Notes: generated from the letters alone by a model not told the origin. A stretch of DNA of 64,000 nt from Ruditapes philippinarum (GCF_026571515.1 NW_026856503.1:62001-126000); one strand, 5' to 3'. Counted from the first letter of the stretch, positions 3,680-53,757 are shown. Numbers and translations are program-made.

Positions 3680-3691
3680 CGAAAAGCATTT

Positions 3692-21373: not shown

Positions 21374-22227
21374 ATATATTCTGTTGTTTTATCAATATTT
21401 TATCAATATTAAAAGGGTTTGAGGTTTTTTTAACATGATAGGACTGAAAATATTTTTTCCAGATAAATGTACCATTTGATGTAGGTTTAGACCACTAATC
21501 TTTGTGCAAAATTTCAGATCATTCGCGCACCTTGTTTTTCCAGAATAATTATTCTTATTGCAAAACAAAATTTTTCACTCAAATCGGGCTAAGAAAAGCA
21601 TAAAAATACGATTTTCAATTTATTTCAAAGTATATTTCTTAACTTTCTTTGCATATATTTCTGTATAAAGTGTCCCAGCTCATTTATGTTAGAAATTAAA
21701 ATGTAATGTTTATAGGCTTTTAAACCTCAGTGGAGTCCTAAGTACTTTGAAAATATATTCCTTATAGATCTATACACGGAGACTGAAAATTCTAAAATAA
21801 AATTGGATTAAACGTAAAGAAACATCTTCCATTTTCTTAAAATAAATAAATATGTGGTTTCGTGTATTTTTTTTCTTCCAATTTTACTCATTTCGCAGTT
21901 ATTAATTTACATGTACCTTTATGCTACCAAAATTATCAGTCACCTTGATGAATCATACGTATACAATACATACTAAGCCGTTTCAAGAGCATTTTTTGCT
22001 TAACTTTCTAAAAAAATCAGTGATGTTCTTCGTATTCAGAAGGGCCCGAGTTAACGTTGCATAATTATTTTTGTAACTTTTCTTTAATATTATTTTTAAC
22101 ATTTGGTTAAAAGACAAAACTTTTATCTAATTGAAACTGTATTTTTTTTATTAACTGCATAGTTTCTATAGTGTTTATAGTTTATCCCTGCTACGAGTAA
22201 AATGAATGGATATTCGTTTTTACATAT

Positions 22228-22452
22228 GTGCCGCGTCACGACAAAACCAACATTATGGGTTTGCGATCTAGATCAGCCTGCGCATCCGCGCAGTCTGATC
22301 AGGATCCGTGCTGTTCGCTTACAAACCCTATTACAAGTAGAGAAACTGATAGCGGAAAGTATGGATCCTGATCAGACTGCGCGGATGTGCAGGCTGGTCT
22401 GGATCCATGCTGGTCGCAAACCCATTATGTTGGTTTTGTCGTGACGCGGCTC
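22228..22452. mobile_element. GAGCC-MITE, ATAT TSD
   Basis: Same family; ATAT on both sides. Confidence 0.9.
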
Positions 22453-23419
22453 ATATATGAATTCAGATATATTTTGATTAATTCACTAATAATTTGCTCC
22501 TGAGATTTATAAAACCTTTACTTTTCAGTGTCATTTTCCGACAATTATATATACTAAAAATAATTATAGTAATTATATTGTCATATTTTCTTTCTCCCTT
22601 TGATATATCAATTTGAAACTAACACGCCTAATTGCTAATATTTACATGACTATTTATCTAAAATAAAGATATATATCTTGCGCAATATGTTTCTCTTTCA
22701 TATTTGAGTTTCTGATATAATAAAAATCAGGTATTTGTCCGATATCAAATAGTAGCATTAATTATATAGTCTCTATCAATAATCAAGGACAACGGGTGTT
22801 AGGAATCGGGTGAACTCTCAGTTAATATATTTAATCTCTTGGATCAACTTCTTACTCATTGATATTATTGTAACGAATGGCCAGGGTTAAGCCTCCTTGA
22901 ATAGCAAACAAAAGAATAGACGCTCGTTCAAGATAACGTACAAATAGTTCCGATTTCAGACCATGGAACTTGTAATTAATGAATTAGCCCAAAAACTAAT
23001 TGAGAATGTTGTAAAACTTCATCTTAAACATCTGTAATGGAAGCTAAAGAATCAAGTAGCTTTGAACAAATAAATTATATTGGTCAAGATCGGCACAGTT
23101 GAAAAAAAAAATCAAATGATAAAGAAAAATAAAATGGTGAATAAACTGACACAGAAAGTGACTATGACGTTCTACATAATTTGTAGCTCTACTGTTCTTA
23201 AAACAAGTTAAACCTTGTAATTAAAAGTTGCCATGTTGAGCCTCGTATGATTTTTTTCTTTTCTTTTTGTGGAACAAAAGGCAAACATTAAAATAAAATT
23301 CAATCAATTCAATTGAATTAAAATAAAAAGATGTCACTAAAAGCATCATTTCATTTTAATTTATACCTTGTTTTATAATCATAATAACTTTGTATCAAAC
23401 CTTCAGTATATCAGCAGGA

Positions 23420-33488: not shown

Positions 33489-36400
33489 TCACATGAGCCG
33501 AATTAGAATTAAGAAATCTTCCATGGCTTGTAGCATGGCTCTTCCCGAATCATTCAGTACGCCCACTTCATTATCTAACATTGTAAGACCTTCTACAGAT
33601 GCTCTCAATGGTTCAGCAAGTTTAACTGCTTTCTCCCAGTTACCAGCTCGTGCATGGAAAAGAACAAGTCCTAAAATAAAAAATACATTTACATCATTTG
33701 GATAGTGGAAACTAGAAAAAGCATTTCACTATATCTAATCGAAATATAAAAAATACAACAAAATGTAAAACATTAGGCGGCAAAGATCTTCTTCGCCTTT
33801 TTGTTAAATTATGGAAAATCTTGCTGTAGACCTTAAAAATTAGATATTTTACGTTACATGTAACTGCAAAATAAAATCTAAAAAAATAAAATATGTGTTT
33901 GTCGTGATTTATTCTTTCCTTTATAAGCAAATTCGTGTGCAATATTGTTTGATATTTTGAATTATTCTATTCATAGTCAATTAAAATTATATATTTGAAA
34001 AAAATAGATACACTTGACTGATATTTGTCCACATGAAATGCTTATCTATTCAATAAAATCATCATAATATAAAAGAAATTTTATCAGTTTAACAAATACC
34101 ACTGTATTAAGTAACGCTACTATAAAATGTTAATCAGAACGTTTCTTGGAAAACAAGCACTGCTCGTATTACATTTACATGCCACTTGCTATATATTTTC
34201 AAGGTAATATAATTAAACACTAACCTGTCGAAACATAAGAAGCATGAAAGGTTTTGTCAAAATCTCGAAGTTCATGTCGTATTGGTGAATATACCTTTGC
34301 CATGGAGAGCAATCTGTAGTCAGTAAATGTTCCATGTACAAGGTCGGCAAGGAATAAAGATGTATGTATAAATTCATGGACAATTTGTTCGGCATAATGC
34401 GCCACTGTCTGTTCCTTATATGATTTAGGATCTTGCCAAATAAGCCCGAGAGCTGAACTGACACTCCCGCCTGCATAACCCGGATGCTCTGCCTTGTAAA
34501 ACGCTATGCCCGCTACAACTTGGTTAATCACTTTGTGCAATTCTGGCATTGTGTCATTTATCAGTGACATCGCTGCTTCAATCTTTTCCAGTATATAAGC
34601 TTGTTCTTCTAATGTATACACATGAAGTCCCGCATCTACATATTCTTTGCTCATTTCTTGAAGACCAGAACGATTTAATGCATCGATCACAAGGGAATCA
34701 TTGAAACTGTATACCATCTTATTGCGCTGAACAGGAATTTTTAGAGTTTGGAACTTTTCAAGAATTTCATAAAACATAAGCTTCTGTTTTTCTGGTGTTG
34801 CGACCAATCCGGAGAAACCAAGAAGACCAAGTTTTTGATTCATGAAACCAATGTCATAAGAAAAAGGCCAAAACAGTTTTTCAAAGACATTGGATTTTGA
34901 AATTTCACGTATTACTGCTTCTTTACCTAAAGCTGGATATTTTAGTTTAAAGTATTGTCGAGTTAAATCATCATGCCCAAAAATAGAGATAGTCTGTTTC
35001 CATTTACTGAAATACATGTTTTCTTCTAAAGGTGCCTCCTTGACGAATGTATCAGCCATTTTAAACCACTGATTTGTATTACTGTTTTTGAATTCTTTAT
35101 TTAAAATCTGTATCTCCTTATTAGTCCCGTTTGTCAGTTCCTTGTTCACCGTGATAAAAGCAGAAACATTGCTCTCAGCGCAAATCATTATATGTGTTGG
35201 GTTTTTATCATCAATCTCTGCATTGTAAATCATTCCTTCTGGTGACCTTTTTGTTACCATTGACAAAGGTTCATATTTATCTGTTTCTAAAATCTCGCTA
35301 AACAGCAGTTTTGATGGCTCTTGATGTTTGACATTGTACACCATCACCTCTGGTGTTCTTTTTGTAACCATTGGCATGGGCCCATGTCTATTTTCATAAA
35401 GAATGTCGTTATATAGCATTGCAGATGGCTGCGGATCTTTGACATTGTACATCATCAATTCTGGTGTTCTTTTTGTTACCATTGACAAAGGTTCATGTCT
35501 ATTTGTATCAAATATGTCGTTGAACTGCATTGTCGAGACCTGCTGATCTTTTGCATTGTACATCATTCTTTCTGGTGATCTTTTTGTTACCATTGACAAA
35601 GGTTCATGTCTATTTGTATCAAATATGTCGTTAAACTGCATTGTAGATGGATGCTGATCGTTTGCATTGTATATCATTCCTTCTAGTGATCTTTTTGTTA
35701 CCATTGACAAAGGCTCATGTCTATTTGTATCAAATTTGTCGTTAAACAGCATTGCCGATAGCTGCGGATCTTTGACATTGTACATCATCACTTCTGGTGA
35801 TCTCTTTGTTACCATTGACAAAGGTTCATGTCTATTTGTATCAAGTATGTCGTTAAACTGCATTGTCGATGTCTGCTCATCTTTTGCATTGTACATCATC
35901 ACTTCTGGTGATCTTTTTGTTACCATTGACAAAGGTTCATGTCTATTTGTATCTGGTGTTACTGTAAACATTGACAAAGGTTCATGTCTATTTGTATCAA
36001 ATATGTCGTTTAACTGCATTTCCGATGGCTGCTGATCTTTTGCATTGTACATCATTCCTTCTGGTGATCTTTTTGTTACCATTGACAAAGGTTCATGTCT
36101 ATTTGTATCAAATATGTCGTTTAACTGCATTTCCGATGGCTGCTGATCTTTTGCATTGTACATCATTCCTTCTGGTGATCTTTTTGTTACCATTGACAAA
36201 GGTTCATGTCTATTTGTATCAAATATGTCGCTAAACAACATTGTCGATGACTGAGGATCTTTTGCATTGTACATCGTCACTTCTGGAGATCTTTTTGTTC
36301 CCATTGACAATGGTTCATGTCTATTTGTATCAAATATGTCGCTAAACAACATTGTCGATGACTGAGGATCTTTTGCATTGTACATCGTCACTTCTGGTGA

Positions 36401-39400
36401 TCTTTTTGTTCCCATTGACAATGGTTCATGTATATTTGTATCAAATATGTCGCTAAAACAACATTGTCGATGACTGAGGATCTTTTGCATTGTACATCGT
36501 CACTTTCTGGTGATCTTTTTGTTCCCATTGACAAAGGTTCATGTCTATTTGTATCAAATATGTCGCTAAAACAACAATGTCGATGACTGAGGATCTTTTG
36601 CATTGTACACATCATTCCTTCTAGTGATCTTTTTGTTACCATTGACAAAGGTTCATGTCTATTTGTATCAAATTTGTCGTTAAACAGCATTGACGATAGC
36701 TGCGGATCTTTTGCATTGTACATCATCACTTCTGGTGATCTTTTTGTTACCATTGACAAAGGTTCATGTCTATTTGTATCAAATATGTCGCTAAACAACA
36801 TTGTCGATGACTGAGGATCTTTTGCATTGTACATCGTCACTTCTGGTGATCTTTTTGTTCCCATTGACAAAGGTTCATGTCTATTTGTATCAAATATGTC
36901 GTTAAACTGCATTGTCGATGGCTGAGGATCTTTGTCATTGTACATCATCACTTCTGGTGATCTTTTTGTTACCATTGACAAAGGTTCATGTCTATTTGTA
37001 TCAAATATGTCGTTAAACTGCATTGCCGATGACTGAGGATCTTTTGCATTGTACATCATCACTTCTGGTGATCTTTTTGTTCCCATTGACAAAGGTTCAT
37101 GTCTATTTGTATCAAATATGTCGCTAAACAGCATTGTCGATGACTGAGGATCTTTTGCATTGTACATCATCTTTTCTGCTGATCGTTTTGTGACCATTGC
37201 TAAGGGTTGATTATTTTTCTTATCGAAGGTATTTTCTGTCGTAGAAGTATCGATGCTTAACTGATTGCTAAAAACCATTGATAATTTCTGCAGATCTTTT
37301 TCTGTTTGACTTTTGACATTAATTCTATTATTTGGTTCATATTGCTTTGTTTTTAGATACTCAGTAAATTCTTTGTCCTTTCTCTCCTCTATCTGTCTTA
37401 ACGTAATATAATTATCTCGTACATTCCACCGGAAATTGCTTTGTTTATACTTGTGAACATTATGTACCAATTGCCGTTCCAACGGAACTGCTAACATGGC
37501 CAGAGCATCTGAAATATTCAGGTACAATATATATATACTTTATACTTTAAGATAAATTATGTATTTATGTTTTGTTGTAAACAATTGACAATCATATTCA
37601 CTCCAATATATATTACAATAACCTAGTACCCTGTGTGTGTGTGTGTGTGTGTGTATGTGTGTGCGTGCGTGTGCGTGCGTGCGTGTGCATGCGTGCGTGT
37701 GTGCAACAATATAATATGAAAATTGCAGACTCGGTTTGATTGAGTCTGTTCATAATGATAATGTAAAAGTGCAAAATCCCTCACGCCCCCTATCACCGGC
37801 TTAAGCAGTATTTATTCTTCAACACTAACATGCTAAAATCAAGAATTCCGAAGGACCAGAAAACACTGAGGCGAAGTACCTGGGATGATTTTACCGATGT
37901 CACACGTGGTGTAGTGAATCTGGAAAACGGGTAATCTCTTGGAAGCAATTAAAGCAACACTATAATAAGAAAATAATTGGACTCGGTTTAATTGAGCCTG
38001 TAAATGAGAAATAATGTAAAAGTGCAACATTTCTCATGCCCCTAGTACTGGCTTAAGCGGTATTCAATCTTTGACACTAACATGTTGTAATCACATTCAT
38101 AAGTTCTACATGACACGCCACTTTGAGATAAAAAAGTCAAAGTTGAATGTCATTGTGACCTGTAAAAAACATAAGATCAAAGTTCATAAACCTAGGAATA
38201 TCAATATATGTACAAGAACCTTAGTTAGTCCTACTTGCGATAAGTAAAGTGGAGTGCGCTACTTTTCGGACAGCGTTTATAGATAAGGCTTGATAAAAAT
38301 AGATTAGGATTAGTACGAACGAACTAACGAACGATGGATGGATATAGAGATACATTAAGTTTGCTCTGCGCATCTATTCAATCATATTTGTCGCATTTGT
38401 TTGGCTTTGCATCGGTTATATACAGAGATAGATGTATTGTTACTGCAAGACGAGAATGATCCCCGCAGTGCCACTAAAAGCTGTTGCAATATTTTTACCC
38501 CACAACGTTATGTTCCTTAAAAAAAGAATTTTGAGACTCTATTTACAGACGCTCGTTGTTGATACACTCCTGCACATCGGTCGAATGTTCCACTATCGCT
38601 CACTGTCTGAAGTAACGTGAGTGTATTTAGTGAGCTGCGAAGGGAGCGTAGTTGATAGTTATAACATTCATGCTAGTGTACAGACAAGGAAAGAAGGAAA
38701 CCCATCCAATCCAGTACTTGAGTCTTATCAATTTTGCACCTCTGCTTAGATGGTGTCAAAGTAACGCACGATCGTTCATTTGAATAGAAACACATGCCGA
38801 CTGGTTGAGTTATAGGCTATAAAGCTATTTCAAGTAAACTGCTTAAATGGCATCACGACTGGACAAAAAACTAAACAGATAAAACCACGATTATTGCACC
38901 ATGTAAAATTGACATGAATTCGGGGTCGTTATCATAAAATCTGTAACAAATGATTATAAAGAAGAACAAAATAATTATAACAACGGTCTGATATGCATTT
39001 TTCCTTTGGGGGAGGGAGTTGTTGTGACATTACATATGCTAACGTTGTCATCATCATCATTACAATTACATTACAAGTATCATCAGATAAGCAAAACTAT
39101 CGATATGTATAACAGGTCTTATAATTCTTTCTTTTTTAATTTTAATAGGCAGGTAAAGAAATATCCCAGACATAAATGCACACATATAAAATAGTAACAA
39201 GCTTTAAAAACAATATATTTTTATGCTGCCTTCGATTTTATACTGCTCCTTTAACCAGAGACATAGATAACAGAGATAGGCAACTGCCTAGCCAGTTAAA
39301 ATATCACGCGTGCCTGCTAAACTTAAACCTTGTAGCAAGTAAAACTTATTAACCAGACATCAAAATCAGTAAAATAATACATTTTCTGAAAGCTTATGCA

Positions 39401-42074
39401 TTTGTCTATGGCTGCAGGTAAAACATTTACAGTTCCCATTTAAATAAATGATACATCAATTTTTAAAGAGAACTACTTAAGGTAGAACGCGACACTTTGC
39501 GAACTTTCGAGTAGCGCCTTGAAAATTGGCATGCAAAAAGTTGATTATATTTCCGATAAGGTTCCGTTGATTTTATTTCAATAGTTTTAGCCAATTTTTG
39601 TACACACGGCGTCAAAGTTGACCATCAAAGCCCGTTTTTTAACATGACGTTGTTGCGTATCCTTGGCAACTGTTACGGGTATTTCAACGCCATTTGCGGA
39701 CAAAATATCCTAAATTCTACAGCATTCGACGGAAATTATTTTTTCCTTTAAGCTGATATAAAATTTATCGTTTTACGCCAAAAAATGTTTGAAAAATGGA
39801 AAGAAAACTGTTAATTTTGTGTAAAATTTGACGTTCAGTTTTTTCGGCTTTAAAGCGGCTTATTAAAAAATTCCTGAAATAAATTTTTGATTTTTTTGCC
39901 ACCAAATGCTAAGGACCACAATGGAAATAAGAGCTTGCTTGCTCTTTTTTGTGAATGTTGATGGTCAACTTTGACGCCGTGTGTACAAAAATTGGCTTAA
40001 ACTATTGAAATAAAATCAACGGAATTTAATCAGAAATATGGTCAACTGTTTGCATGCCAATTTTCAAGACGCTGCTCGAAAGTTCCCAAAGTGTCGCGTT
40101 CTACCTTAATAATTTTTGTTACGAAACTATTCATATGACGGAAAAAACTGGCTCAGTGGGTATGTTCTGCTATGTTTTTCTAAGTGAAAGGTATGAAAAG
40201 TTACCAATATTTTAACATGCATCAATAGATAAAAGATTTACCTTTCAAATAGTATATAATATTAAAGGATCAAATGTACATCCATTAAGTTTTATTTGAT
40301 ACAAAATGCCTATTTTTTCACTTTTTGATAGGCATGATTGATATTTCAATAGAGTATATAAGAGCTGCTTATCTCTGTTATCTATGTCTCTGCTTTAACC
40401 AATTACTGCATGAGCATTTTGTGAAAATGGCTGTTTTCATTGAAAAATCTCCCGTTACAAGTTCAAATTGCTATAAAACTATAAAAAATGCTTCAATACT
40501 AATCAGACTAACAACATGCTCAGTCTTACATTTCCTGTTACATGGCAACGAGGGGACATCTCAAAATTGCCAAAAATCACTATTTTGCGTTGATTTTTTT
40601 ATATTGATTTTGATCCTTTTTATTCTTTTTATAATATAGTGAGAAAATTTTGTTGCTTAGTTCCTTAGTTAGAGATTAAGAAGAATGTATATACATGTTT
40701 GTACATTTTAACAAAGTGACGAATGTTATAAGCGAAACATCGAGATTTTATTCTATTTAAGCAAAGCGGCTCATGTCTCTGTGACTGCGTTAGAAAAATG
40801 ACTGGATAAGTCTTATAATCAGATGACCTGGCTAGCTGGCCAATATGTTGATGTATACCTAATCGCCCCCTCCTCCATTTTCGATTCGCTTACGGAGTAC
40901 TTATTAACATTAATAATCTCTAAGCATTTAAAAAACATCAGATAAACCTTTGTGTTAAATTTTTTAAGGTCAAGACATTTATTCCAGCACCAGTCTTTTT
41001 GTTACTTATTGGGGTTGCATCGAAGATGACACATTGATCACTCCTTCGTGTTTTCGTAGAACCAGTCTTCCTCCAAGACGTCAATACAGTGTCAGAACGG
41101 ATAAAGAAATGTTTTATGCACAAACGCAGATCTCATGTATTATATTTACACTAAATATCTCGCGAATTCACACTTAGTTCTGAAGAAAGTTATGTAGCCT
41201 CGAGGCCAATTCCCCCCACCCGAGAATCTCTAACCCGAACGCGTCGTTCATCATGCTTCATGTTAATTGATAGTATCGTCTATGAGTCGGCAACATTATG
41301 CATTTTCACAGTCAAATATATCTTACTTTACGAATCTAGACTAACTTAAAGATTACACAAGCTTGCAGGCGAGTTTTTACTTCCGCTTTGAACAACTCTG
41401 TTTCTCAAACAATTTTTTCTTGCAATCTTTGAATCGCTTCTCTGCCAGATTTTGTTTTTCATTGAAAGGCTAAATTTTACTTAAGATACTTCACTTTAGT
41501 TTCTGTAATTCACTTTACATTTGCGAGATTCTTATTTCGCATCATGTATGCAGACTTCATTTGTTCTGATCCCCTTTCAAAGTTCCATTTTGTTAAGTTA
41601 CGCCCATCGTTTTCTCTTTTAGGGCACAGATATTTTTTCACCTGGATACCACACGCCGCTTTTCATGAAATGACACTAAAGTGTCACATTCCATGATCAC
41701 CGCCGTATGAACACATCTGCTCAAAATTTTTACCATTGCACGTAAAAAAGTTGAATACTGCTTAAGCTGGTGCCAGGGGACATGGACAGTAGCTTGCACT
41801 TTCCAGTACTGTCCATGAACAGACTCAATCAAACCGAACATGCTCAATCAAACCGAGCCTGCAACACTTTCAGTTTTTTTACGTTTTTAACTTACTTTAG
41901 GGATTATTATTTCTTTCTTATACCTCGTGACACTTCTCAACTCAGTTTGAAAAAAAAATTAATGTCAGATCTATCCAAATTAAAAAAGTGTACATTAATG
42001 AATTTTAAAACTTTAAAAACTAACAACTTACCATAACAAGCCACCAAGATCACTAGACAAATTATTGTCTTCAT
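33489..42074 (-). CDS. Paralog A: secreted KR-repeat precursor fused to an aKG-HExxH-like domain. Exons 42032-42074, 34225-37508, 33489-33670; ~1167 aa if four clustered insertions at ~36455-36610 are removed
   Basis: Exon 1 plus exon 2 give MKTIICLVILVACYDALA (signal peptide); phase-1 GT-AG introns; 17 x 37-aa units ending KR; HEFIH at 34364-34378, SPIRHELRD, FHASYV; exon 3 LVLFHARAGNW...VLNDSGRAML...RLM*. Confidence 0.85.
35246..37188 (-). repeat. Coding tandem array in paralog A: 17 x 111-bp units (SPEVMMYNAKDPQSSTMLFSDIFDTNRHEPLSMVTKR), 18 KR sites
   Basis: First-to-last KR distance 1937 = 17x111 + one 45-bp in-frame insertion + 5 nt of small insertions. Confidence 0.95.
37632..37704 (+). 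repeat. (GT)n/(GCGT)n microsatellite
   Basis: Direct inspection. Confidence 0.95.
39256..40392. mobile_element. Non-autonomous TIR element, CAGAG...CTCTG ends, 7-bp TSD CTTTAAC (P-element-like)
   Basis: TIR CAGAGACATAGATAACAGAGATA; CTTTAAC at 39249-39255 and 40393-40399. Confidence 0.8.
39481..40105. mobile_element. Nested MITE with ~150-bp TIRs, GG...CC ends and TTAA TSD (Kolobok-like)
   Basis: TTAA-GGTAGAACGCGACACTTTG ... CAAAGTGTCGCGTTCTACC-TTAA. Confidence 0.85.
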
Positions 42075-42128
42075 TCCTCTTTAATACTGTAAAGGTCAGT
42101 GAATGAATAATGTGCTCATTGATGGTTC

Positions 42129-42135
42129 TTATATA
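42129..42135 (-). promoter_or_regulatory. TATA box of paralog A
   Basis: TATATAA ~55 nt upstream of the exon-1 ATG; same position in paralog B. Confidence 0.65.
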
Positions 42136-43429
42136 CGAGGTAGTGTCATATGTCATAGCAAATGTTATCATTGAAGCCGAAAATGATCCATCACTGCTGT
42201 TTACATTACATAGGTTCAAGTCACTATTTAGAAAAAAATGAAAAGTCCGTTTAATATCAAAGTTAATTTATTTGTAAAATTGCAAAACAAAAAACAATAA
42301 GCAAATAAAAAACAGAAAAGAAAACAAACATAATACAAAAAAAGAAAACAACAAAGCACAAAAGTTAAATGTTGCTACATGACGCATATATCTTTTGCTT
42401 CAACATCAAAAGCATGGGTATTATCCAAAATCGACAGCTTCTTTTAAAGCAGCACGCCTCCAGATTCATTCTAATTTTCATGAAATTTTTGAAAATGTAT
42501 CTAAATGTGTAATACTGTGAAGTAACCAAAAAGAAGGAATTTACACATTATCAGCGGCACTTTCAATATCCATGAAAATTACCAAAAGAAAGGTCAAAAT
42601 ATGGTTAAATAGCCTTTACTGCGTTAGTAGCGCAGTAGAAATATAGCTGTAAATACTGTAAAATTGGTCATTAATCGCATTTAATATGTAAAATACTACT
42701 TGAATCTTGAACTTACATCTTAGTACATTTCTCTCAAGTTTGATTTAATTGAAATGTTTTGACTCATCTGGAGACATGTAGCTTTAGATAGATAGATACA
42801 TAGATACATAGATAGATAGATTTCGGCATAAAGGTAAACATGTTACATGATAAACAAACACAATGTAGATTAAAACAATTACAAATAAATGAATAAATAA
42901 GTAAATAAATGAATAAATACTATATTATGTAAACTATGACATGTTCCCAAAACCAAGGATAGCACAAATAAGAGCAAGCTCTTATTTCCATTGTGGTCCT
43001 TACCATTTGGTGGCATGACAGAGAGGTATTTCATAAAGGAAAAAAAAATCTCACTAATTATAAGAAAAATCACATTAATGAAGTATATCATTTAAAATTA
43101 TCACATTTTAAAATGTAAGGTAATGTAAATAAAAAGTCAGTATCACTTTAAGAAATAATCATGTACATATTAAGAAAAGATTACATTAAAAACAATTATC
43201 ACAGTTGTTTTAAGTATGTAAGGAAAGGACATGCCATAGATTACGCTATTCAAAAAAAGGATAAAGTTTTTAAAGTCTTAATAAAAAATTTAAAACAAAT
43301 TTCAAAAAAAAAAAAATGAAACAGTAAACCTGAGCCGAAAAATATTTCAATAAAAAAAAAATGAAAACATATAAAATTTTCTTGCAAGAAATTTTAAGAA
43401 AAACACTTACATGCTACTTAAAAAGTGAC

Positions 43430-44290
43430 TTTTTAAGGCTTTAAACGATGAAATTTGTTAATTTCAGTTATACAAGTTGGAAAACTGTTCCATAGTTTAG
43501 CGCCAATAAAACTTAAAGACTTTGACCCGGAACCTTTAACCTTAGGAAGACAATACCCTCCATTTTTACTCAGTCTGGTGCAATAAGAATGCATAGATTC
43601 CTGAAAAACAAAACAATCACTTACGTACTCTGGGGCCATTTGGTTTTTAACTTTAAAAACATGACATAACATGATTTGTTCAACTCTTTCACAAACTGGT
43701 AACCAATGAGGGGTTTAAAATGGGAAGGGCCAATATGAACTCTGGAATCAAGGTTTAGAACAAATCTCATCATTTTATTTTGTATTGTCTGTAATTTATT
43801 TTTCAAGACCTGAGTTAAACCATTTTACCAGACACAGCAGGCATAGTCAAAGTGGCACTGAATTAAGGAATTGACAAGCAGTTTTTTTGGTATGCTGTGT
43901 AAGGAAAACTTTTCTTACGGTAAAAGGACTTTAACCAGGCGTTAGCCTTCTGAATTACTGAGTCTGCCGTGTAACCAAAGGACAGGTACTAATCAATAGT
44001 TACCCCAAGATATTTAATGGATGTGGATGCTTCTATTGCAGTGTCATTACAGTTTATGTTTAATTTGGAATGTGACCTAAGTTTTTGTTTAGACCCAAAC
44101 ACAATGGACTCAGTTTTACCTAAGTGCAACGATAACTTATTATCAATTTATTATTGACTTACTGAGGACAAATCTTCAGATACAGAAATTTCCACCTCAG
44201 GTAATTTTTTCCAGAAACAAGTATTCCAGAGTCATCAGCATATAGCAATAGTCTATTTTTCAATACCGCTGACATGTCATTGACGTAAAT
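43430..44290 (-). mobile_element. 5'-truncated L2/CR1-type LINE remnant (RT, frameshifted)
   Basis: Minus-strand fragments KNRLLLYADDSGI, KYLGV, HFDYAC, KLQTIQNKMMRFVL, GAKLWNSFP. Confidence 0.85.
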
Positions 44291-46181
44291 TAAATTTATT
44301 GAAATCACTGCCTAAATGTCGCCTAAAAACAGCAAATTGTTCAAAAGTGCACGTGTAACTTAAAAAGTACATAAGTTTTAAAGATTAGACTGTACAAAAT
44401 TACACGTTTATTTTAGTCTTAACATTTCTTGATGGGCAGTACTTTATGTATATTTATGGTTTTAGACAGACTTGACATTTTAAATTTTTCATCAGAATAT
44501 TTCATTGATAGGCGATAACCATTCATTTGTAGCAAAGATAAAACAGAAATATCGTACAATACAATAAATATAATACAATTTCGTGTGCTGATATGTTAGG
44601 AAATGCAGAGAATAAAAACAGTCTGCAAAGAAAAGTAAAGAGTAGAATTTAGTGAAGAAAAGGGTATAGAACAACAATGCAAAATAACGTTAAAAGAAAC
44701 TTCAAGAAGAAAATATCGTCAAAGAAAGATACGATTGAATTTTCTTTATTTTTTTGTCAAAACATGTATTTACATTTTTACATTTCTTGATTATAAGTTT
44801 GGATTTGACTTGAAATGTCGTTAAAATATATATTTTATATAATACATCTTAGCATACAATTCTAAGCTTATATTTACGTTAAAGATATGAAATTAAGTCT
44901 TTTTTAACGTGTGTATTATAACTTTTCTTTCTTTAGCAGCAACATATTTTTTATCGTTTTTCACGTTTTGAGTACATTGACCCTTTCGTTTTCTTACATG
45001 AAAATAATCTTAAAGCTTTTTTCACGTTGTTCTTCTTCAAAGGCATCCATCTCGTCGTTTTTAGCTTTTTTTTGCAATTTATAGATAAGTTCAATGATTG
45101 AAGAGCACTTGCCATCGGCATAATAATAGAAGTTGAATGGTTTATGACTGCAATTTTGGTATATATTTTTGTCTACAAACATTGAAATAATAACCGTGCA
45201 TTGATTTTTTTGTCATTTAGCTTCTGTTGAAATGTGTACACAATTGCATGATGGCTGATTGATGCCATGCCGTCGATGCATAACATGTGTCGCGTTTTCG
45301 CAAACTCCTGTCGTATCTATGCATCTTCGGGGCAAAATGCGAAACTACGGCAAAGTTAAACTTTTTTCGCTTCTTTGTGTTTTTTACATTTCCGCATCTC
45401 CATTTATTTGCGTTGTTGCGAATGAGGAAAGGCACAACAATGCGAAAAAGCAAAAATGCTGAGGCTAGACAAATAAGATGCAAAAACACGACACTTTCTA
45501 TATATTGTATTTATGCCTAAATTTGTCTTTCTCTTTGTTGTTCGCCGCGAAAACAAAGTAGGAATACACGATGCGACTTACGTCAAAATGATCATTATTT
45601 GTATTTATATCAAAATATCTTTATTAGTTTATCATGATTTTGCTGAACATTCAGTATTTGTTACCTTTACTTCAGTAACTAAGAGTTTGCCTTTTCAAAA
45701 CTAAAATGTTCTTTTGTATTGTGGTATGAATTAAATATAATTCCTTTTATTTCAAAAACTAGAATATTTTCTTGTTACCTTTCTTATTCCTTTTACAAAT
45801 TTATGAAAATGTAACAAATACATGTAGTCGAACATAAGATAACAAATGTTATTGTGTAAGCGTTACTTGAAAACTTATTTCTTTATCAGCGAGGGATATC
45901 CCTTTATCAAGATTTTTTAAAGTTCATTTATGACACACATTGTGTAGCAAGTACAACAAAATAGATTGTCAAATACTCGTATATCTACCCTTCTCAAAAT
46001 GACTGATGTTCTCATGTATTATTTTAATGCTCCATATGATCTCATTTGTATTTAGGATAAATCTCATAGATGGCTAATCGAAATTTTATTTCGATTCATA
46101 ATAGCAACAAAAGTTACACAATGTAAAAAATAAACCTTTTATTATATAAAACATTTAATTATAATATTTAACTCAAAACTT

Positions 46182-49100
46182 TCACATAAGACGAATAACA
46201 AATAAGAAATCTTCCATGGCTTGTAACATGGCTCTTCCCGAATCATTCAGTACGCCCACTTCATTATCTAACATAGTAAGACCTTCTACAGATGCTCTCA
46301 ATGGTTCAGCAAGTTTAACTGCTTTCTCCCAGTTACCAGCTCGTGCATGGAAAAGAGCAACCCCTAAAATATCAAGAAACATCCACTTAATTGAGACATT
46401 AAAAAAGAAAAAACAAATGAAATTGTTAGTGACAAAGATTCTCTTTGCCTTGTTCATTTCTTTTTAAATATGAAGTGAAAGTTTGCCTGTGAAAACTTTC
46501 TATTTTTCCTTAGATATTAACTGCATTTTTACATGTAACGACAATATGAGACTTCTTCTCAAAACTTGTGTTCGTTGTTATTTTGTTCTTGATATTACTA
46601 CAAATCCACGTGTATTATTGCAAAACATGCATGTTTTATAAAACTATTCGAAGTCTATTTTTTACGAAATTTTAACATATTGAAATGTCCATAAATAAGG
46701 CTGGACCATTTGTAATTTAGGGTCGAACGCTATTCGTATTTCATCAACATGTCGCATGTTACATACTTAACTTCCAAGGTATTATAATGATATACCTACC
46801 TGTCGAAACATAAGAGGCATGAAAGGTTTTGTCAAAATCACGAAGTTCATGACGTATTGGTGAATAGACTTTTGCCATGGAGAGCAATCTGTAGTCAGAA
46901 AATGTTCCATGTACAAGGTCGGCAAGGAATAAAGATGTATGTATAAATTCATGGACTATTTGTTCGGCATAATGCGCCACTGTCTGTTCCTTATATGAAT
47001 TAGGATCTTGCCAGATAAGCCCGAGAGCAGAACTTATACTTCCACCAGCAAAACCCGGATGCTCTGCCTTGTAAAACGCTATGCATGATACAATTTGATG
47101 AATAACTTTGTATAGTTCTGGCATTGTGTCATTTATAAGTGACATCGCTGCTTCAACTTTCCCTAGTATATAAGCTTGTTCTTCTAGTGTATACAAATGA
47201 AGTCCCGCATCTACATATTCTCTGCTCATTTCTTGAAGACCAGAACAATTTAATGCATCGATCACAAGGGAATCATTAAAACTGTATACTATCTTATTGC
47301 TCTGAACAGGAATTTTTAGAGTTTGGAACTTTTCAAGAATTTCATAAAACATAAGCTTCTGTTTTTCTGGTGTTGCGACCAATCCGGAGAAACCAAGAAG
47401 ACCAAGTTTTTGATTCATGAAACCAATGTCGTAAGCAAAAGGCCAGAAGAGTTTTTCAAAGACATTGGATTTTGAAATTTCATGTATTACTGTTTCTTGA
47501 CTCAAAGCTGGATATTTTAGTTTAAAGTATTGTCGAGTTAAATCATCATGCCCAAAAATAGAGATAGTCTGTTTCCATGTGCTAAAAAATTTGCTTTCTT
47601 CTAAAGGTGCCTCCTTGACAAGTGTATAAGTCATTTTGAACCACTGATTTATAAAACTTGAAAGCTCTATCACTTGATTGTTCTGGTTTGCCGATTCATT
47701 TCTCTCTATGGTAGTAACAGAGACATTGGTTCCAGCACAAATCATGATATGCCTAGGTTTTTTATCATTTAGCACGGCTTTGTATGCCATCACTTGTGGG
47801 GACCTTTTCTCGAACAACATTGACATTAGTTGATGATTAACTGTATCCAATGTGTTACTATATCGCATTACCGATGGCTGCATATCTTTTGCATTGTACA
47901 TCATCACTTGTGGTGACCTCTTTTTGTACATCATTGACATGGGTTGATGTTTATCTTCGTCCAGTGAATTACCGAACAGCATTCCCAAAGGCTGCATCTC
48001 TTTTGCATTATACATCATCACTTGTGGCGACCTTTTTCCGTACATCATTGACAAGGGTTGATGTTTATCTGAATCCAGTGAATTACTGTACAGCATTCCC
48101 AAAGGCTGCATCTCTTTTGCATTATACATCATCACTTGTGGCGACCTTTTTCCGTACATCATTGACAAGGGTTGATGTTTATCTGAATCCAGTGAATTAC
48201 TGTACAGCATTGCCGATGGCTGCATGTCTTTTGCATTATACATCATCACTTGTGGTGATCTTTTTCCGTACATCATTGACAATGGCTGAAGATTATCGAT
48301 ATCCAACGTGTTACTGTATAGCATTGATGATGGCTGCATATCTTTTGCATTGTACATCATCACTTGTGGTGACCTCTTTTTGTACATCATTGACATAGGT
48401 TGATGTTTCTCTGCATCAAATGAATTACTGTACAGCATTGCGGAAGGCTGCATATCTTTTGCATTGTACATCATCACTTGTGGCGACCTTTTTCCGTACA
48501 TCATTGACATGGGTTGATGTTTATCTGCATCCAATGAATTACTGTACAGCATTGCGGAAGGCTGCATATCTTTTGCATTATACATCATCACTTGTGGCGA
48601 CCTTTTTCCGTACATCATTGACAAGGGTTGATGTTTATCTGCATCCAATGAATTACTGTACAGCATTGCCGATGGCTGCATATCTTTTGCATTATACATC
48701 ATCACTTGTGGCGACCTTTTCCCGTACATCATTGACAATGGCTGAAGATTATCGATATCCAATTTGTTACTGTATAGCATTGATGATGGCTGCATATTTT
48801 TTGCATTATACATCATAACTTGTGGTGACCCTTTTCCATACATCATAGATAATGGCTGAAGATGATCGATATCCAATATGTTACTGTATAGCATTGCTGA
48901 TGGCTGCATATCTTTTGCATTATACATCATCACTTGTGGTGACCTCTTTCCGTACATCATTGATAAAGGCTGAAGGTTTTCAATATTTAATGTGTTACTA
49001 TATAGCATTGACGATGGCTGCATATCTTTTGCATTGTACATCATCACTTGTGGTGACCTTTTGCCAGTAATTTCTATTGGCAGAGTACCGGTGCCTAAAT

Positions 49101-51653
49101 TGTTCCTGTACATCATCGGTGACGGCTGCAGATCTTTTGCGTTGTACATCATTACTTGTGGTGGTTCTTTGCTGTACAACATTGACAGTGGCTCTAGATT
49201 TGTAGTTTCCAACTTGTTGCTGTACATCATGGTCATTGGTTCAACCTCTTTTAAAGTCATCATTACATTCCTTGGTGAATGTGAATTTGGACTCTTATTG
49301 TTTAATTTATTTCTGGCTTCATTCTGCTTTATTTTAAGATACTCAGTAAAGTCTCTGTCTTTTTTCTCCTCTAGTTTCCTCAACGATATGAAGCTGTCTT
49401 CGTCAAGATTTCGTACATTCCACCGGAAGTTGCTTTCTTTATACCTGTTCACATTTTCTATCAACTGCTTTTCTAATGGCACTGGTAACAAAGCCAAAGC
49501 ATCTGAAATATTTAAATAGATACAAGACATCATAAACATGTGTAGATGTTTTGAATTATTAAGTTAACTATTTCCTCTGCTAATATACAATGCAATCTTT
49601 TATTTTCAGTTAGTTTTATTTTATTTTCAATTGCCGGCATAAGAAAATTATTAGTTATTTCTAACGAATATTTAATAGTTACAACTGACAATTCACGGGT
49701 TTCTTAGATTTCCTATTTTATGTGTATTTAAGTAATTAGTACTGCTACTTTAATCATTTTCTGTAGTTATTTTCAGGAAATACAATTAAATGTTAAAAGA
49801 AAAGAATTGAATCGTAACCATACAAAAGCTTTGATTAGTAGGAAATTGTCTAAATTTATTTGCTATGCAACATGAGCTAGAGATAAAACTATTAACTTCC
49901 AACTAATTTCAAACACTAATAATTATATATATATATATTTTTTATTTCATGACTGTGAAGTTATGTATGGAATATTACTTTTCTCGCATTTAGATTGTTT
50001 TTTCCCCCATTGGTTATATGTTATTAATTTGTGTACACGCCATTATAGTTTTTAGCAATAGACATGTTTGTGCCTTAATAAAATTTTGAAATAAAAATAT
50101 TGAAGTGAAAAAGTGTAGTAAGAGGATTCGCTCAAAGAAACGTATTATTAAATTTTTGAGAGTATTAAAACAAAATTTATATATAGATCCTTATCACTTA
50201 TATAATGCGAAAACCGTTAAAGTGGATTGGTCTACAATGGAAATATTTTGAACAAATTTTTATGAAAAACAACAAAAGAAAATATTAAATTATTTTTGAA
50301 AAAAAAAATGTTGATATTATTTTAAGTGATGTAGTATGAACATTTGTATGAATAATATTTTGTTCTAGGATCAAGCCTAACGGAAAAGAATGTGCCTAGC
50401 CAGATGATGGAACTGGCAAATAAGAATTTAAATATACGACGCTCTCCCTACTAAGAGGAAGATATTTTACGAATGACAAGAACACTCTTCTAGAAATCCG
50501 TATAATTTATTTAGCAGAATAATATTCCAAAAATCTAAACAGTTGTTTGAACACTTTTAAAACATCTCATCGTATAACATTCTATGTTTTAAATACTAAA
50601 TTGAGCCGTGTCACGGCAAAACCAACATAATGCGTTTGCGACCAGCATGGATCCAGACCAGCCTGCGCATCCGCGCAGTCTGATCAGGATCCATTCTGTT
50701 CGCTATCAGTTTCTCTACTTGTAATAGAGTTGGTAAGCGAACACCATGGATCCTGATCAGACTGCGCGGATGCGCAGGCTGGTCTAGATCCATGCTGGTC
50801 GCAAACCCATTATGTTGGTTATGTCGTGACACGGCTCAATTGTTGGCGTTAGTTATAATTGACGTTTTAATTCCCAAAATGTTTGTCATAAGATAAAGTA
50901 TTTGATACTGAAGTATTTAAGTTTTCTTAATAAATGAATGTCAATGATAATAACTAAGCTAGTCGCTATTTAACTATTATTGTTGCTATTTGTAAGCGCA
51001 CAGTTATTTTTAACTAGGCACTTTTAAAGGGTAACGTAAATTATAGCATCGAAATAAATTTAAATATAGTCATACGTGTCCACTCATTACAAAAAACTAA
51101 ATGAGCCGCGTCACGACAAACCAACATAATGGGTTTGCGACCAGCATGGATCTAGACCAGCCTGCGCATCCGCGCAGTCTGATCAGGATCCATGATGTTC
51201 GCTATCAGTTTCTCTACTTGTAATAGAGTTGGTAAGCGAACAGCATGGATCCGCGGATGCGCAGGCTGGTCTGGATCCATGCTGGTCGCAAACGCATTAT
51301 GTTGGTTTTGTCGTGACACGGCTCAAATGATTCGTTTTCACCTTTAATTGAGAAGATGGCCGTCTTGTGATATTGAAATAACTGAATTCTTTATTGATTT
51401 TAAAAAGTAATGTCAGATTTGTTGTTTTTGCCGTTGTAACTTTTAACTTTGTGAATTAATGAAATGACTGTTTGGAAGAATTAAAAAAAAGGGAAAAAAG
51501 AAACCAGTAAATAAAAAATAAATCGATAAAAAACAACAAAAATTAAAAACACAAACAAAATTAAAATAAAAAATAAATCAATAAAAAAAAACAAGTAACA
51601 AACAACTTACCATTACATGCCACTACGATCACTATACAAACTATTGTCTTCAT
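46182..51653 (-). CDS. Paralog B: secreted GKR/KR-repeat precursor fused to an aKG-HExxH-like domain. Exons 51611-51653, 46800-49502, 46182-46363; 975 aa, intact
   Basis: MKTIVCIVIVVACNDALA signal peptide; phase-1 GT-AG introns at the same positions as paralog A; CDS 43+2703+182 = 2928 nt open; 11 x 38-aa units; HEFIH at 46939-46953. Confidence 0.92.
47803..49062 (-). repeat. Coding tandem array in paralog B: 11 x 114-bp units (SPQVMMYNAKDMQPSAMLYSNSLDADKHQPLSMMYGKR)
   Basis: First-to-last KR distance 1254 = 11x114; degenerate units flank the array. Confidence 0.95.
50603..50837. mobile_element. GAGCC-MITE, AATT TSD (intron 1 of paralog B)
   Basis: Same family. Confidence 0.9.
51103..51324. 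mobile_element. GAGCC-MITE, AAAT TSD (intron 1 of paralog B)
   Basis: Same family. Confidence 0.9.
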
Positions 51654-51706
51654 CTCTTACTATTGTTGTTTACTTCAGTTATGAAAATACCCTTAAAGGA
51701 TGCTTC

Positions 51707-51713
51707 TTATATA
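51707..51713 (-). promoter_or_regulatory. TATA box of paralog B
   Basis: TATATAA ~54 nt upstream of the ATG; position conserved with paralog A. Confidence 0.65.
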
Positions 51714-53757
51714 GTGTAATGTGTTGATGGTCTAGTAAATAGTCGAGATGTCATGGCAAAGGTGACCATGTACGTGAATAAAGGGCAAAGGTGACGGCAT
51801 TGCTGTTTCGCAATAGTATAAACACATCTATAGATCCAATGTGATGATCAGACAAAATGGAAGGTCCATCGACTATCAGATGTGTTTAAAAACAAAATGT
51901 TAATTTGTAACAATTCAAATGTAACAGTTGCTTAAAACACCAAAAGCATTTAGTACCCAAATTCGACTGCTTCTTATTTTCGAAGCTAAATCGTTTGGTA
52001 TTGGCCGCTGCCAAACTATCGCCTTAAGAAATACTGCACCGAATACATCAAGTACTTGTTTTTGTTTTCAATGATTTCAACGTCAAAATGGCATGTAGTG
52101 TTTACGTTTTTAATGATAATAGAGCATATTTGTCAAAGATAAGAAATGTTACTTTTACAAGACAAATGTCATAAAGTTTAAGACGTCTATGAATTAAGTA
52201 AAGTACACCAAAGACACAGATAACGTTATCTTTATCATCGTCCTGGTTACTATTTGAAACAGCCGCCAGCTTTTCTTTCTGCCTAGCAGAAATTTTGTGA
52301 GTTCAACAAAGATTTTTACGCGCTCCAAACGAGTGGAAACTACATTAAATTGTATTATTTACTAGCAGGTTTCAATTAAATATGTATTGTAATTATCTAA
52401 TCACTGGTCTTCGTTTTGTCACAATAATTTGTCCTGTGAAAGAACCTTAAAACAAAATAAGAGAAGGAAAGTATTGAACATCTAGGTGTGGTTATGTCTG
52501 TTCTGGATAAAAACATGTAACTTTTCTCGTGCATTCACAACTGTGGAGAAGCACGAGGACGCATTAAAAGGCCAAACCCACAGGGCGAGTGATTTTATAA
52601 ATCCGAGCACTTCTGCACAATACGAGTACAATACACGAATAAAATGCATTCGTTTTATTATTGCACAAAAATATACGTTTGATTCTTTTTTTTTTTCATA
52701 TAAAGAAACCGTCACGTGTGCTTAGGAAACCACTAGGCATCCATCGCAATTAGCTATTTTTGCATGACGCCCTAAATAAAGCATATTAAAAACGTGGAAA
52801 AAAAACACGACGCGCTCGCACGTGTGATTTTATCGTCTTCCTTGTTAATAGATACCTGCGCAGCAAGAATACACTATATTAAGCTTAAGCTATAAAATTA
52901 TGATTCGAGGGGTCAGTATAGTTCTAAATGATCAGCGAAAAGTTTATAACACATAAAATATGTTTAAGATACATTGTATTTTGTTGTTAAGGGCAATCAA
53001 AACAAATAAAGTGTTTAATGTTTAGATTGTGAACGTTTCTTTATATGTGTCGTGTTTAATGTGAAGACTACAGAATGTATTAGTCTCGAACAGTCATCAT
53101 GTTTTCTGTTTGCAGTCGAAAAGTTGCATCAATAGCAAGAAAGTGCATCTTCAAGTGTATTCTGTTGAAAACAATTCTGATTTGTATGCTCATTTTGTTT
53201 ATATCTGCAATTATTATTTACAAACGTAAAACTGCATATACTCTTTGCTCGTTGTTTTTGTTAAGTACGCCAAGCTGAAAATTGAAATTTTAATGTAAAA
53301 GATAACAATGTTTAATCGTACAGATGTAAATAAGTGCGATTGTGTAATATCTCCTACATACTCACCTCTTGATAGATCTGTTGTTTAAACAATGTCAAAG
53401 TTTAATAATCAAGTATAACAATGTACATTTTTATAAATTTTCAAATTAAATCAAGAATTCAAGTATGCAATCAGTTAAATTTTTTATTTTTATTCCCACC
53501 ATGAAGTTGAACATAAAATATAAATTGTTTAGAATGTGCCGTTATGACAAGGGTAAAAATTAGAACGATGATACCAAATAAAATGATGTAAATATACAAT
53601 CTAAATTGAAACAGTGTTGAATGGATTTGTTTACATATATGTAAAATATTAACCATCATTGTTCACGGAATATCCGTTATAAGGTGTTGTAGTTTTTTGT
53701 GTTATTACGATAAAATATATAAATGTCTTGATTAGAATTGCAAATACGATTTTCAAA

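Follow-up and report, generated by a model that had tools for sequence, protein, structure and literature searches.

What is the nature of two neighbouring genes of the Manila clam, Ruditapes philippinarum, in each of which a long array of short repeated peptides is joined to an enzyme domain otherwise known only from bacterial peptide-antibiotic pathways? The window analysed here is a stretch of 64,000 nucleotides (GCF_026571515.1 NW_026856503.1:62001-126000). A first-pass annotation had described two tandem paralogues encoding a signal peptide, a pro-region, 11-17 tandem units of 37-38 aa delimited by KR or GKR, and a domain of about 345 aa with the motifs of bacterial aKG-HExxH enzymes. It proposed that the secreted protein modifies its own repeats, which are then released by convertases. 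The observation is confirmed: both genes are present at the positions given, on the minus strand, and the domain motifs are found in both. The interpretation is supported only in part. The arrangement suggests that molluscs make chemically modified peptides in a way not yet described for animals.

Structure of the two clam genes

Both genes have the same three-exon plan, with a signal-peptide exon, a giant exon carrying a conserved N-terminal motif, the repeats and most of the enzyme domain, and a short last exon. The features, all on the minus strand, are as follows.

51704-51713 (-), gene A TATA box (TATATAAGAA), about 50 nt upstream of the start codon
51611-51653 (-), gene A exon 1, coding part: start codon, 14 codons of signal peptide and the first base of a split codon, with a GTAAGT donor
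46800-49502 (-), gene A exon 2: conserved N-terminal motif, repeat array and about 285 aa of the aKG-HExxH domain, with an AG acceptor at 49503-49504 and a GT donor at 46798-46799
49380-49502 (-), gene A conserved N-terminal motif (..ENVNRYKESNFRWN..)
47788-49062 (-), gene A repeat array of 114 nt (38 aa) x 11.2 (example unit at 48949-49062)
46939-46953 (-), gene A HExxH motif (HEFIH)
46819-46842 (-), gene A R-D-F-D-K-T-F-H segment, with the invariant Arg and the nearly invariant distal His
46182-46363 (-), gene A exon 3: the last 59 codons of the domain (helices, ..SGRAML..) at 46185-46363 and the stop codon at 46182-46184
42126-42135 (-), gene B TATA box
42032-42074 (-), gene B exon 1 (signal peptide)
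34225-37508 (-), gene B exon 2: N-terminal motif, about 17 repeats of 111 nt (37 aa) ending in T-K-R, and the domain; frame-disrupted as assembled
36427-36654 (-), two adjacent aberrant repeat units in gene B
34364-34378 (-), gene B HExxH motif (HEFIH)
33489-33670 (-), gene B exon 3 at 33492-33670 and the stop codon at 33489-33491

Gene A is intact. Its exon 2 has 900 internal codons with no stop, both introns are GT-AG, and the exon lengths 43+2703+179 sum to 2925 nt, or 975 codons in frame. The joining of its three exons is inferred from sequence signals and by analogy with the NCBI model of gene B. The signal peptide was read from the sequence by inspection, from a start of Met-Lys giving a basic N-terminus, 11 hydrophobic residues and an Ala-x-Ala site at the start of exon 2. 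The first exon of gene B, which the first-pass annotation did not locate, was found here and aligned to exon 1 and the promoter of gene A. It has the same length, phase and GTAAGT donor, and the same TATA decamer sits at the same distance upstream.

The earlier description needs one correction, as gene B is not intact as assembled. The unit at 36654 is 114 nt (+2 and +1) and the unit at 36540 is 113 nt (+1 and +1). Three of these four 1-2 nt insertions extend short A or T runs or a TG dinucleotide, and they may be real mutations or assembly and polishing errors. Exon 2 is therefore 2 nt out of frame and the reading frame splits into ORFs at 36388-37527 and 34220-36490. NCBI therefore starts its model of gene B, here called P0012, at an internal Met. 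From 36490 downstream, P0012 is identical to the translation of the window, and it agrees with the exon 2-exon 3 junction. The protein of gene A was not found in the protein collection searched. A six-frame search of the 1.4-Gb assembly found only these two copies, which is a lower bound.

Tandem Repeats Finder gives 114 nt x 11.2 copies at 88% matches for gene A, and 111 nt x 6.7 plus 11.0 copies for gene B (35214-37199). Each unit of gene A has three PxxM(M/L)Y sub-motifs and most end in G-K-R. Lys-Arg bounds every unit in both genes. Gene A has 11 K-R-S boundaries, 10 of them preceded by G or K, and its N-terminal part holds 8 G-K-R-type sites, whereas gene B has none. The signal peptide, tandem copies bounded by dibasic sites and, in gene A, Gly before the site for amidation are the sequence features of an animal multi-copy prohormone or neuropeptide precursor.

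Family membership and relatives of the domain

The domain belongs to the aKG-HExxH peptide beta-hydroxylase family (NCBIfam TIGR04267, InterPro IPR026337). Against the curated cutoff of 40 bits, exon 2 alone scores 53.4 in gene A and 53.8 in gene B, the full gene B protein scores 63.5 (E 2.5e-17), and six other animal-type relatives (five from named animals) score 54-61. A profile of 60 homologues hits the ChlH structure (PDB 8s5f) at E 2.3e-7 and aligns HExxH, the Arg and the distal His. In an alignment of 60 animal-type and other (presumed bacterial) homologues, H705, E706, H709 and R742 (P0012 numbering) are invariant and H749 is nearly so, although one Mercenaria paralogue has Tyr in place of this distal His. 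The downstream S-x-x-R...R-x-x-D/x...H segment is present, and R742 and H749 align with the R and H of the R..P....H segment of ChlH, where these residues are reportedly the 2-oxoglutarate-binding Arg and the third metal ligand. The AlphaFold model of P0012 has pLDDT above 90 over residues 470-815, and the predicted fold is the distinct zincin-like fold of the ChlH HExxH domain. A best structural match to a conventional zinc metalloprotease, with no aKG-dependent turnover, had been named beforehand as grounds for rejecting the proposal. By NCBIfam score, profile-to-PDB alignment and fold, the domain is not a conventional zincin peptidase, and its best structural and sequence match is not a zinc peptidase with a gluzincin or metzincin third-ligand pattern.

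Selection has been purifying on the domain since the duplication. Between the paralogues dN/dS is 0.33 for the domain (dS 0.24) and 0.23 for exon 3, which is 93% identical in protein. An animal origin and secretion are supported by the introns, TATA boxes, signal peptides and Toll-like receptor neighbours of the genes, and by orthologues on chromosome-size contigs. Orthologues exist in at least seven mollusc species and a rotifer, including other bivalves and abalone. The 17 animal-type sequences form one clade with SH-aLRT 100, nested among sequences whose few named members are bacterial or phage.

The layout of signal peptide, repeats and domain recurs in other molluscs. Proteins of Mya, Mercenaria, Haliotis and further animal-type proteins join different repeats to the same domain, while the Mactra protein has a Cys-rich N-terminal region instead of repeats. 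A PxxM[MKRLV][YILVF] motif occurs 4-50 times in seven bivalve or other animal-type repeat arrays, against at most 5 in shuffles. Dibasic sites are not universal, as a 1300-aa relative (P0029) has about 38 repeats without any. The rotifer protein has a second oxygenase domain (AlkB-like) in the middle region, with no repeats noted there. Release of peptides, and perhaps the substrate role of that region, is therefore not universal. The conserved N-terminal motif is shared with mollusc and rotifer proteins and with bacterial-type HExxH proteins, and in the AlphaFold model of the Mya orthologue (P0002) this segment has pLDDT 87-96.

In the bacterial-type group, four proteobacterial loci have a small ORF with one to three (A)QYVWG-type cores directly upstream of the HExxH gene. 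Two metagenomic relatives (P0036 and P0037) carry 4-5 tandem repeats inside the linker of the enzyme. The separate repeat-core precursor genes next to the enzyme gene make it a reasonable reading that the repeats are the substrate.

A putative self-modifying precursor and its alternatives

The best explanation, held with moderate confidence, is that two tandemly duplicated nuclear genes each encode a secreted polyprotein. From the N-terminus this has a signal peptide, a short conserved segment that belongs to the enzyme, an expanded linker of 11-17 Met/Tyr/Asn/Asp-rich units, and the aKG-HExxH oxygenase domain of roughly 345 aa. In gene A the repeats and domain share exon 2 in a single open frame, so that putative cores and modifying domain are in one polypeptide. 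In the ER or Golgi lumen the domain would bind Fe(II) through the two His of HExxH and the distal His, and 2-oxoglutarate through the invariant Arg. It would then oxidise, on the same chain or a neighbouring one, a residue that cannot be deduced from the sequence, within the short core motif that recurs in the repeats (M-x-hydrophobic-x-D/N, which is PxxMMY-N in this clam). The most likely chemistry is beta-hydroxylation. Prohormone-convertase-type enzymes would cut at Lys-Arg and, in gene A, carboxypeptidase and amidating enzyme would leave 35-aa peptides with a C-terminal Tyr-amide. The system most likely descends from a bacterial RiPP enzyme and precursor pair, captured once by an ancestor of molluscs and rotifers.

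The analysis itself establishes the gene structures, the family membership of the domain by sequence and fold, the conservation of its catalytic motifs, the purifying selection, the recurrence of the plan with quite different repeats in other molluscs, and the single animal-type clade. Expression, catalytic activity including Fe(II)- and 2-oxoglutarate-dependent oxidation, modification of the protein's own repeats and release of the peptides by convertases are inferred, with no expression, peptide or enzyme-activity evidence behind them. AlphaFold leaves all repeats disordered (pLDDT about 30) and docks none in the active site. Release of peptides is a lineage-specific inference, weaker than the link between repeats and enzyme.

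It remains possible, though unlikely, that the domain is an active secreted oxygenase working on other proteins or peptides, and that the repeats are a flexible linker, a regulatory pseudo-substrate or a structural or adhesive low-complexity region that is never released. Bacterial relatives already have a disordered linker of about 70 aa between the N-terminal motif and the domain, and some of these contain a single core-like HVY or FVY segment while the true precursor is a separate gene. The repeats of P0029, the rotifer protein and the undocked repeats of the AlphaFold model are also consistent with this view. However, regular K-R and G-K-R spacing at every unit boundary in gene A is, from established knowledge of prohormone processing, the standard signature of released, amidated peptides, and a short core motif is kept in repeats that have otherwise diverged completely, which would not be expected of a mere spacer.

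Less likely still, the domain could act mainly by cleaving its own repeats, either hydrolytically like a zincin or oxidatively to leave amide ends. The fold is zincin-like, and the family members PflC and PosC remove a C-terminal tetrapeptide oxidatively to leave an amide, with PflC also hydrolysing truncated substrates with several different metals (PMC12636437). The clam units already carry canonical convertase and amidation signals, however, making a dedicated cleaving enzyme unnecessary, and most characterised family members are hydroxylases (PMC13060819). The broken frame of gene B, the absence of the gene A protein from the protein collection and the lack of expression data would fit decaying relics of a horizontal transfer, or annotation or assembly artefacts, but this is very unlikely. 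Gene A has a 975-codon open frame with canonical signals, dN/dS is 0.2-0.3 in the domain of both copies, all catalytic-motif residues are kept, promoter and exon 1 are conserved between the copies, and orthologues exist in other species.

A more far-reaching reading is not excluded, but is rated slightly less likely than not. A bacterial enzyme and precursor pair, captured once by an early spiralian and given a signal peptide and convertase sites, may have become a self-hydroxylating multi-core prohormone, the first enzyme-fused RiPP class in animals. Its cores would evolve fast, so that each mollusc lineage makes a different set of beta-hydroxylated (and, in this clam, amidated) secreted peptides.

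Comparison with known systems

The aKG-HExxH oxygenases were recognised only in 2024 and have been studied solely in bacterial RiPP pathways. Their presence in animal nuclear genes, under purifying selection, behind signal peptides and joined to tandem peptide arrays, points to a route to chemically modified secreted peptides that animal peptide biology has not considered. No description in animals was found in the literature searched, and no paper found there mentions these loci. The system may explain peptides missed by standard peptidomics because of unexpected mass shifts. It would give a clean case of horizontal transfer of a biosynthetic module into Metazoa, and a natural set of enzyme-substrate pairs, with a different core in each species, for studying the substrate rules of the family. 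The question is directly testable in clam tissue, since the predicted products and their processing sites are explicit.

Among the closest known systems is the aKG-HExxH domain of ChlH/ChlBH from Chlorogloeopsis sp. (PDB 8s5f; Morishita et al., Nat Chem 2024, as cited in PMC13060819). ChlH is bacterial, cytoplasmic and fused to a radical-SAM cyclophane synthase, and acts on a separate precursor after cyclisation. Its sequence identity to the clam domain is only about 16%, and the clam domain sits in a secreted protein behind a repeat array. The stand-alone bacterial enzymes PflC/PosC, PesO and BpmH are of the same family and are Fe(II)/2-oxoglutarate-dependent peptide beta-hydroxylases, with PflC and PosC also performing oxidative cleavage (PMC12636437, PMC13060819, PMC12257519). 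Their precursors are separate genes with leader peptides, set in gene clusters with other tailoring enzymes, and none is eukaryotic. The chemistry of the family includes beta-hydroxylation of His, Asp, Phe, Gln and Pro, and oxidative backbone cleavage to an amide (PMC12636437, PMC13060819).

The uncharacterised proteobacterial loci with (A)QYVWG precursors (Massilia aquatica, Phenylobacterium, Pseudoduganella violacea and Azospirillum oryzae) and the metagenomic fusions P0036 and P0037 share the N-terminal N-x-x-x-Y motif, the disordered linker and the domain. The precursors carry 1-3 repeated cores, and P0036 and P0037 have tandem repeats inside the enzyme chain, as the clam does. They have no signal peptide, introns or dibasic processing sites, their core motifs differ, and they lie outside the animal-type clade.

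In the fungal borosins (OphMA type) and plant BURP-domain cyclases, core peptides and modifying domain are likewise in one polypeptide, and the plant proteins often carry several cores. Their enzyme families (methyltransferase and copper-dependent BURP) are unrelated to that of the clam, the fungal proteins are cytoplasmic, and neither system is known to occur in animals. Animal multi-copy neuropeptide or prohormone precursors, processed by convertases, carboxypeptidase and the amidating enzyme, share with the clam genes the signal peptide, the tandem copies bounded by Lys-Arg and, in gene A, the Gly-Lys-Arg amidation signals. No prohormone is known to carry its own modifying oxygenase, and none was found in the literature searched. 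In classical precursors the modifying enzymes are separate proteins.

Structure of the two paralogous genes

The minus strand between 33489 and 51713 carries two paralogous genes built on the same plan, with the following features.

51704-51713 (minus strand), TATA box of gene A (TATATAAGAA)
51611-51653 (minus strand), coding first exon of gene A, 43 nt, encoding Met-Lys followed by eleven hydrophobic residues
46800-49502 (minus strand), second exon of gene A, 2703 nt
47788-49062 (minus strand), repeat array of gene A
46185-46363 (minus strand), last exon of gene A, 179 nt, followed by TGA
42032-42074 (minus strand), exon 1 of gene B
34225-37508 (minus strand), exon 2 of gene B
35214-37199 (minus strand), repeat array of gene B
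33492-33670 (minus strand), exon 3 of gene B

Both introns of gene A are GT-AG, and its three coding lengths sum to 2925 nt, which is 975 codons in frame. Exon 1 of gene B had not been located in the first-pass annotation. A DNA search allowing three mismatches did not find it, but it was recovered by a splice-aware scan and aligns with the exon 1, TATA box, and donor site of gene A. An NCBI protein, P0012 (LOC132746778 of Ruditapes philippinarum, 815 aa), is identical to the downstream part of exon 2 of gene B joined to exon 3, in agreement with the exon 2-exon 3 junction as read here. The exons of gene A were searched separately, and full-length analyses were based upon P0012 and the orthologue from Mya, P0002.

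Tandem Repeats Finder reports 114 nt x 11.2 copies for gene A, with 88% matches, and 111 nt x 6.7 plus 11.0 copies for gene B. In gene A each 38 aa unit (for example 48949-49062, minus strand) begins Ser-Pro-Gln, holds three PxxM(M/L)Y sub-motifs, and ends mostly in Gly-Lys-Arg. There are 11 Lys-Arg-Ser boundaries, ten of them preceded by Gly or Lys. The units of gene B are 37 aa and end in Thr-Lys-Arg, so they carry no amidation signal. As read from the sequences, the first eleven residues of the unit are almost the same in the two genes, while the rest has diverged. A search with the N-terminal half of gene A found no stand-alone repeat proteins. A JGI protein of 667 aa on a 2105-nt contig (P0013) is 94% identical to gene A through the repeats and the first two thirds of the domain, but switches after ..PELYKVI to an unrelated coiled-coil sequence, and may be a chimeric assembly or an allele from another sample.

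Gene B is broken as assembled. Fifteen of the seventeen 111-nt units are exact multiples of three, and there is also one 45-nt remnant, which is in frame. The unit at 36654 is 114 nt, with a TG insertion and an extra T, and the next unit, at 36540, is 113 nt, with an extra A and an extra T. Exon 2 is therefore 2 nt out of frame, which is why the NCBI model starts at an internal Met. These four small insertions sit in two adjacent units of a near-perfect tandem array and three of them extend short runs, a pattern that could be either polishing error or recent decay. The domain of gene B shows no sign of drift. Between the two clam paralogues dN/dS is 0.33 in the exon 2 part of the domain (dS 0.24) and 0.23 in exon 3. 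Both copies have been under purifying selection.

The sequence in and around the two genes also contains the following.

7716-9977 and 18403-20472 (both minus strand), two near-identical long ORFs of 753 and 689 aa, each with a signal peptide, leucine-rich repeats, a transmembrane segment, and a TIR-like tail, which look like tandem Toll-like receptor paralogues; the second ends early compared with the first
25974-26504 (plus strand), an ORF fragment with leucine-rich-repeat sequence, probably an exon of another LRR gene
53728-55011 (plus strand), a 427-aa ORF with many hydrophobic segments that resembles a major-facilitator or SLC46-type transporter, just upstream of the promoter of gene A on the other strand
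50591-50845, 51092-51333, 3687-3932, 22223-22457, 30664-30908, 31739-31978, 55791-56045, and others, a dispersed repeat of about 240 bp that matches itself on both strands (palindromic, MITE- or SINE-like), with copies 76-91% identical, two of which lie in intron 1 of gene A
37632-37703, an imperfect (TG)n microsatellite just upstream of exon 2 of gene B, within intron 1

Bacterial contamination is rejected because of the introns, the TATA boxes, the animal neighbour genes, and the chromosome-scale orthologues.

The aKG-HExxH domain and its distribution

The domain is a real member of the aKG-HExxH family. NCBIfam model TIGR04267 ('aKG-HExxH-type peptide beta-hydroxylase', cutoff 40 bits) scores 53.4 and 53.8 on the exon 2 parts, 63.5 on P0012, and 54-61 on six other animal-type relatives, five of them from named animals. 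Pfam has no model for this domain and gave only spurious low-complexity hits on the repeats. An exhaustive profile search of 1.8 billion representatives found 648 relatives at E <= 0.001, most of which are proteins of about 280 aa. Those with names are 'HEXXH motif-containing putative peptide modification protein' of bacteria (Ectobacillus, Chthoniobacterales) or a Bacillus phage protein.

In a 60-sequence alignment the two His and the Glu of HExxH and an Arg 33 residues downstream are invariant, and a His seven residues after that Arg is nearly so. In one paralogue from Mercenaria mercenaria (P0004, LOC128549660) there is a Tyr where all other animal-type sequences have this distal His, although its tandem neighbour, P0018, keeps the His. 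Sequence searches of the PDB with the clam domain alone and with an animal-only profile found no match, but once bacterial homologues were added, with the 60-sequence alignment as the profile, ChlH (8s5f) was hit at E 2.3e-7 and exactly these residues were aligned. AlphaFold2 on P0012 gives pLDDT above 90 for residues 470-815 and about 30 for the repeats. Foldseek ranks 8s5f first at E 3.5e-8, with a putative zinc peptidase at E 0.19, and the ESM Atlas neighbours are all bacterial aKG-HExxH clusters. A best match to a conventional zinc protease, set beforehand as the result that would count against the interpretation, was therefore not found.

Word-seeded searches found relatives in Mya arenaria, Mercenaria mercenaria, Mactra antiquata, Pinctada imbricata, Dreissena polymorpha, Haliotis rubra, and H. 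rufescens, as well as in the bdelloid rotifer Adineta steineri and several unnamed ENA and Logan sequences. Many lie on contigs of 35-127 Mb. The clam genome holds just the two copies found here, as a lower bound. In a maximum-likelihood tree of the catalytic part, the 17 animal-type sequences form one clade (SH-aLRT 100, stem length 1.28), nested among the other, presumably bacterial, sequences, with the donor not resolved. This fits one ancient horizontal transfer, although the tree was not subjected to a rooted test.

Variable repeats and bacterial relatives

Most of the mollusc proteins have a signal peptide, the N-terminal motif, a variable middle, and the domain, with some database models being N-terminally truncated. 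The middle is a tandem array in most of them and the unit differs completely between lineages, ranging from 15 to about 52 aa, with or without dibasic sites. A short core persists, however. PxxM[MKRLV][YILVF] occurs 36, 8, 50, 24, 9, 4, and 4 times in seven bivalve or unnamed animal-type arrays, against a shuffle maximum of 5. Read by eye, the cores are M-M-Y-N, M-V-Y-N, M-M-Y-S-D, M-K-I-S-D, M-K-L-S-D, M-K-L-I-D and, in the rotifer-like group, M-R-V-E-D. That is Met, then any residue, then a hydrophobic residue, then Asp or Asn one or two places on. Asp and Asn are classical beta-hydroxylation targets and Asp is a proven target of ChlH (PMC12636437), although the target residue here is an inference.

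The conserved motif right after the signal peptide is ..N-V-x-x-Y-x-x-x-N/H-F.. in animals and is also present at the N-terminus of bacterial-type HExxH proteins of 350-400 aa. A first reading of this motif as a RiPP leader was rejected because bacterial enzymes with separate precursors carry the same motif. In the AlphaFold model of Mya P0002 the segment has pLDDT 87-96, within a model of pTM 0.83, and it probably packs on the domain, lying outside the part that aligns with ChlH. It is therefore part of the enzyme, not a leader peptide, and the repeats occupy what in bacteria is a disordered linker.

A scan of species-representative genomes found four proteobacterial loci in which a small ORF directly upstream of the HExxH gene has a conserved leader-like N-terminus and one to three (A)QYVWG-type cores, which looks like an uncharacterised bacterial RiPP family. 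The small ORFs lie as follows.

Massilia locus (L003), 3219-3614 (plus strand)
Phenylobacterium locus (L004), 3433-3699 (plus strand)
Pseudoduganella locus (L005), 3341-3736 (plus strand)
Azospirillum locus (L006), 3428-3655 (plus strand)

In several bacterial-type HExxH enzymes (the proteins P0045, P0055, P0088, and P0092, and L006 3800-4795) the disordered linker contains one core-like segment (..H-V-Y.., ..F-V-Y.., ..H-V-W-W..) that resembles the QYVWG core of the neighbouring precursor. It is possible that this is a pseudo-substrate or the seed of the fused repeats. Two metagenomic relatives, P0036 and P0037, carry four or five tandem repeats (..M-A-L-H..) inside the enzyme chain. So multi-core substrates next to this enzyme subfamily, and even fused into it, appear to predate the animal genes. 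This is the best indirect support for reading the clam repeats as substrates.

Proposed mechanism and comparison with known systems

The observation made in the first-pass annotation, of two tandem paralogues joining a repeat array to an HExxH domain, is confirmed and has been sharpened here. Its interpretation is supported in part, in that the homology is established by the analyses described here, whereas the self-modifying prohormone mechanism is plausible and has comparative support but rests upon inference. Expression and splicing, catalysis, the identity of the modified residue, action in cis or in trans, convertase cleavage, and amidation are all to be understood as inferred, the enzymatic steps being drawn from the chemistry of the family (PMC12636437, PMC13060819) and from established prohormone processing. 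The compartment is not an obstacle, since Fe(II)/2-oxoglutarate oxygenases, such as the prolyl, lysyl, and aspartyl hydroxylases, do work in the ER lumen.

Some of the evidence weighs against a simple universal model. The ENA protein P0029, which like P0160 is of about 1300 aa, has about 38 copies of a 16-aa repeat with an L-M-R-V-E-D core and no dibasic sites. P0029, P0160, and the protein from A. steineri (P0021) carry an AlkB-like 2OG-Fe(II) oxygenase domain between the N-terminal motif and the HExxH domain. The Tyr in place of the distal His in the one Mercenaria paralogue is a further exception, and AlphaFold docks no repeat.

Full-text literature searches on this family in molluscs and other animals, on the loci themselves, and on horizontal transfer of RiPP genes into Metazoa returned nothing describing the family or these genes in animals, within a collection from which most subscription journals are absent, and a search for SjiH found nothing relevant. 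The family of oxygenases is already known from bacterial RiPP pathways. What differs in the clam is that this bacterial RiPP oxygenase family is found in an animal, in a secretory, multi-core, and fused form.
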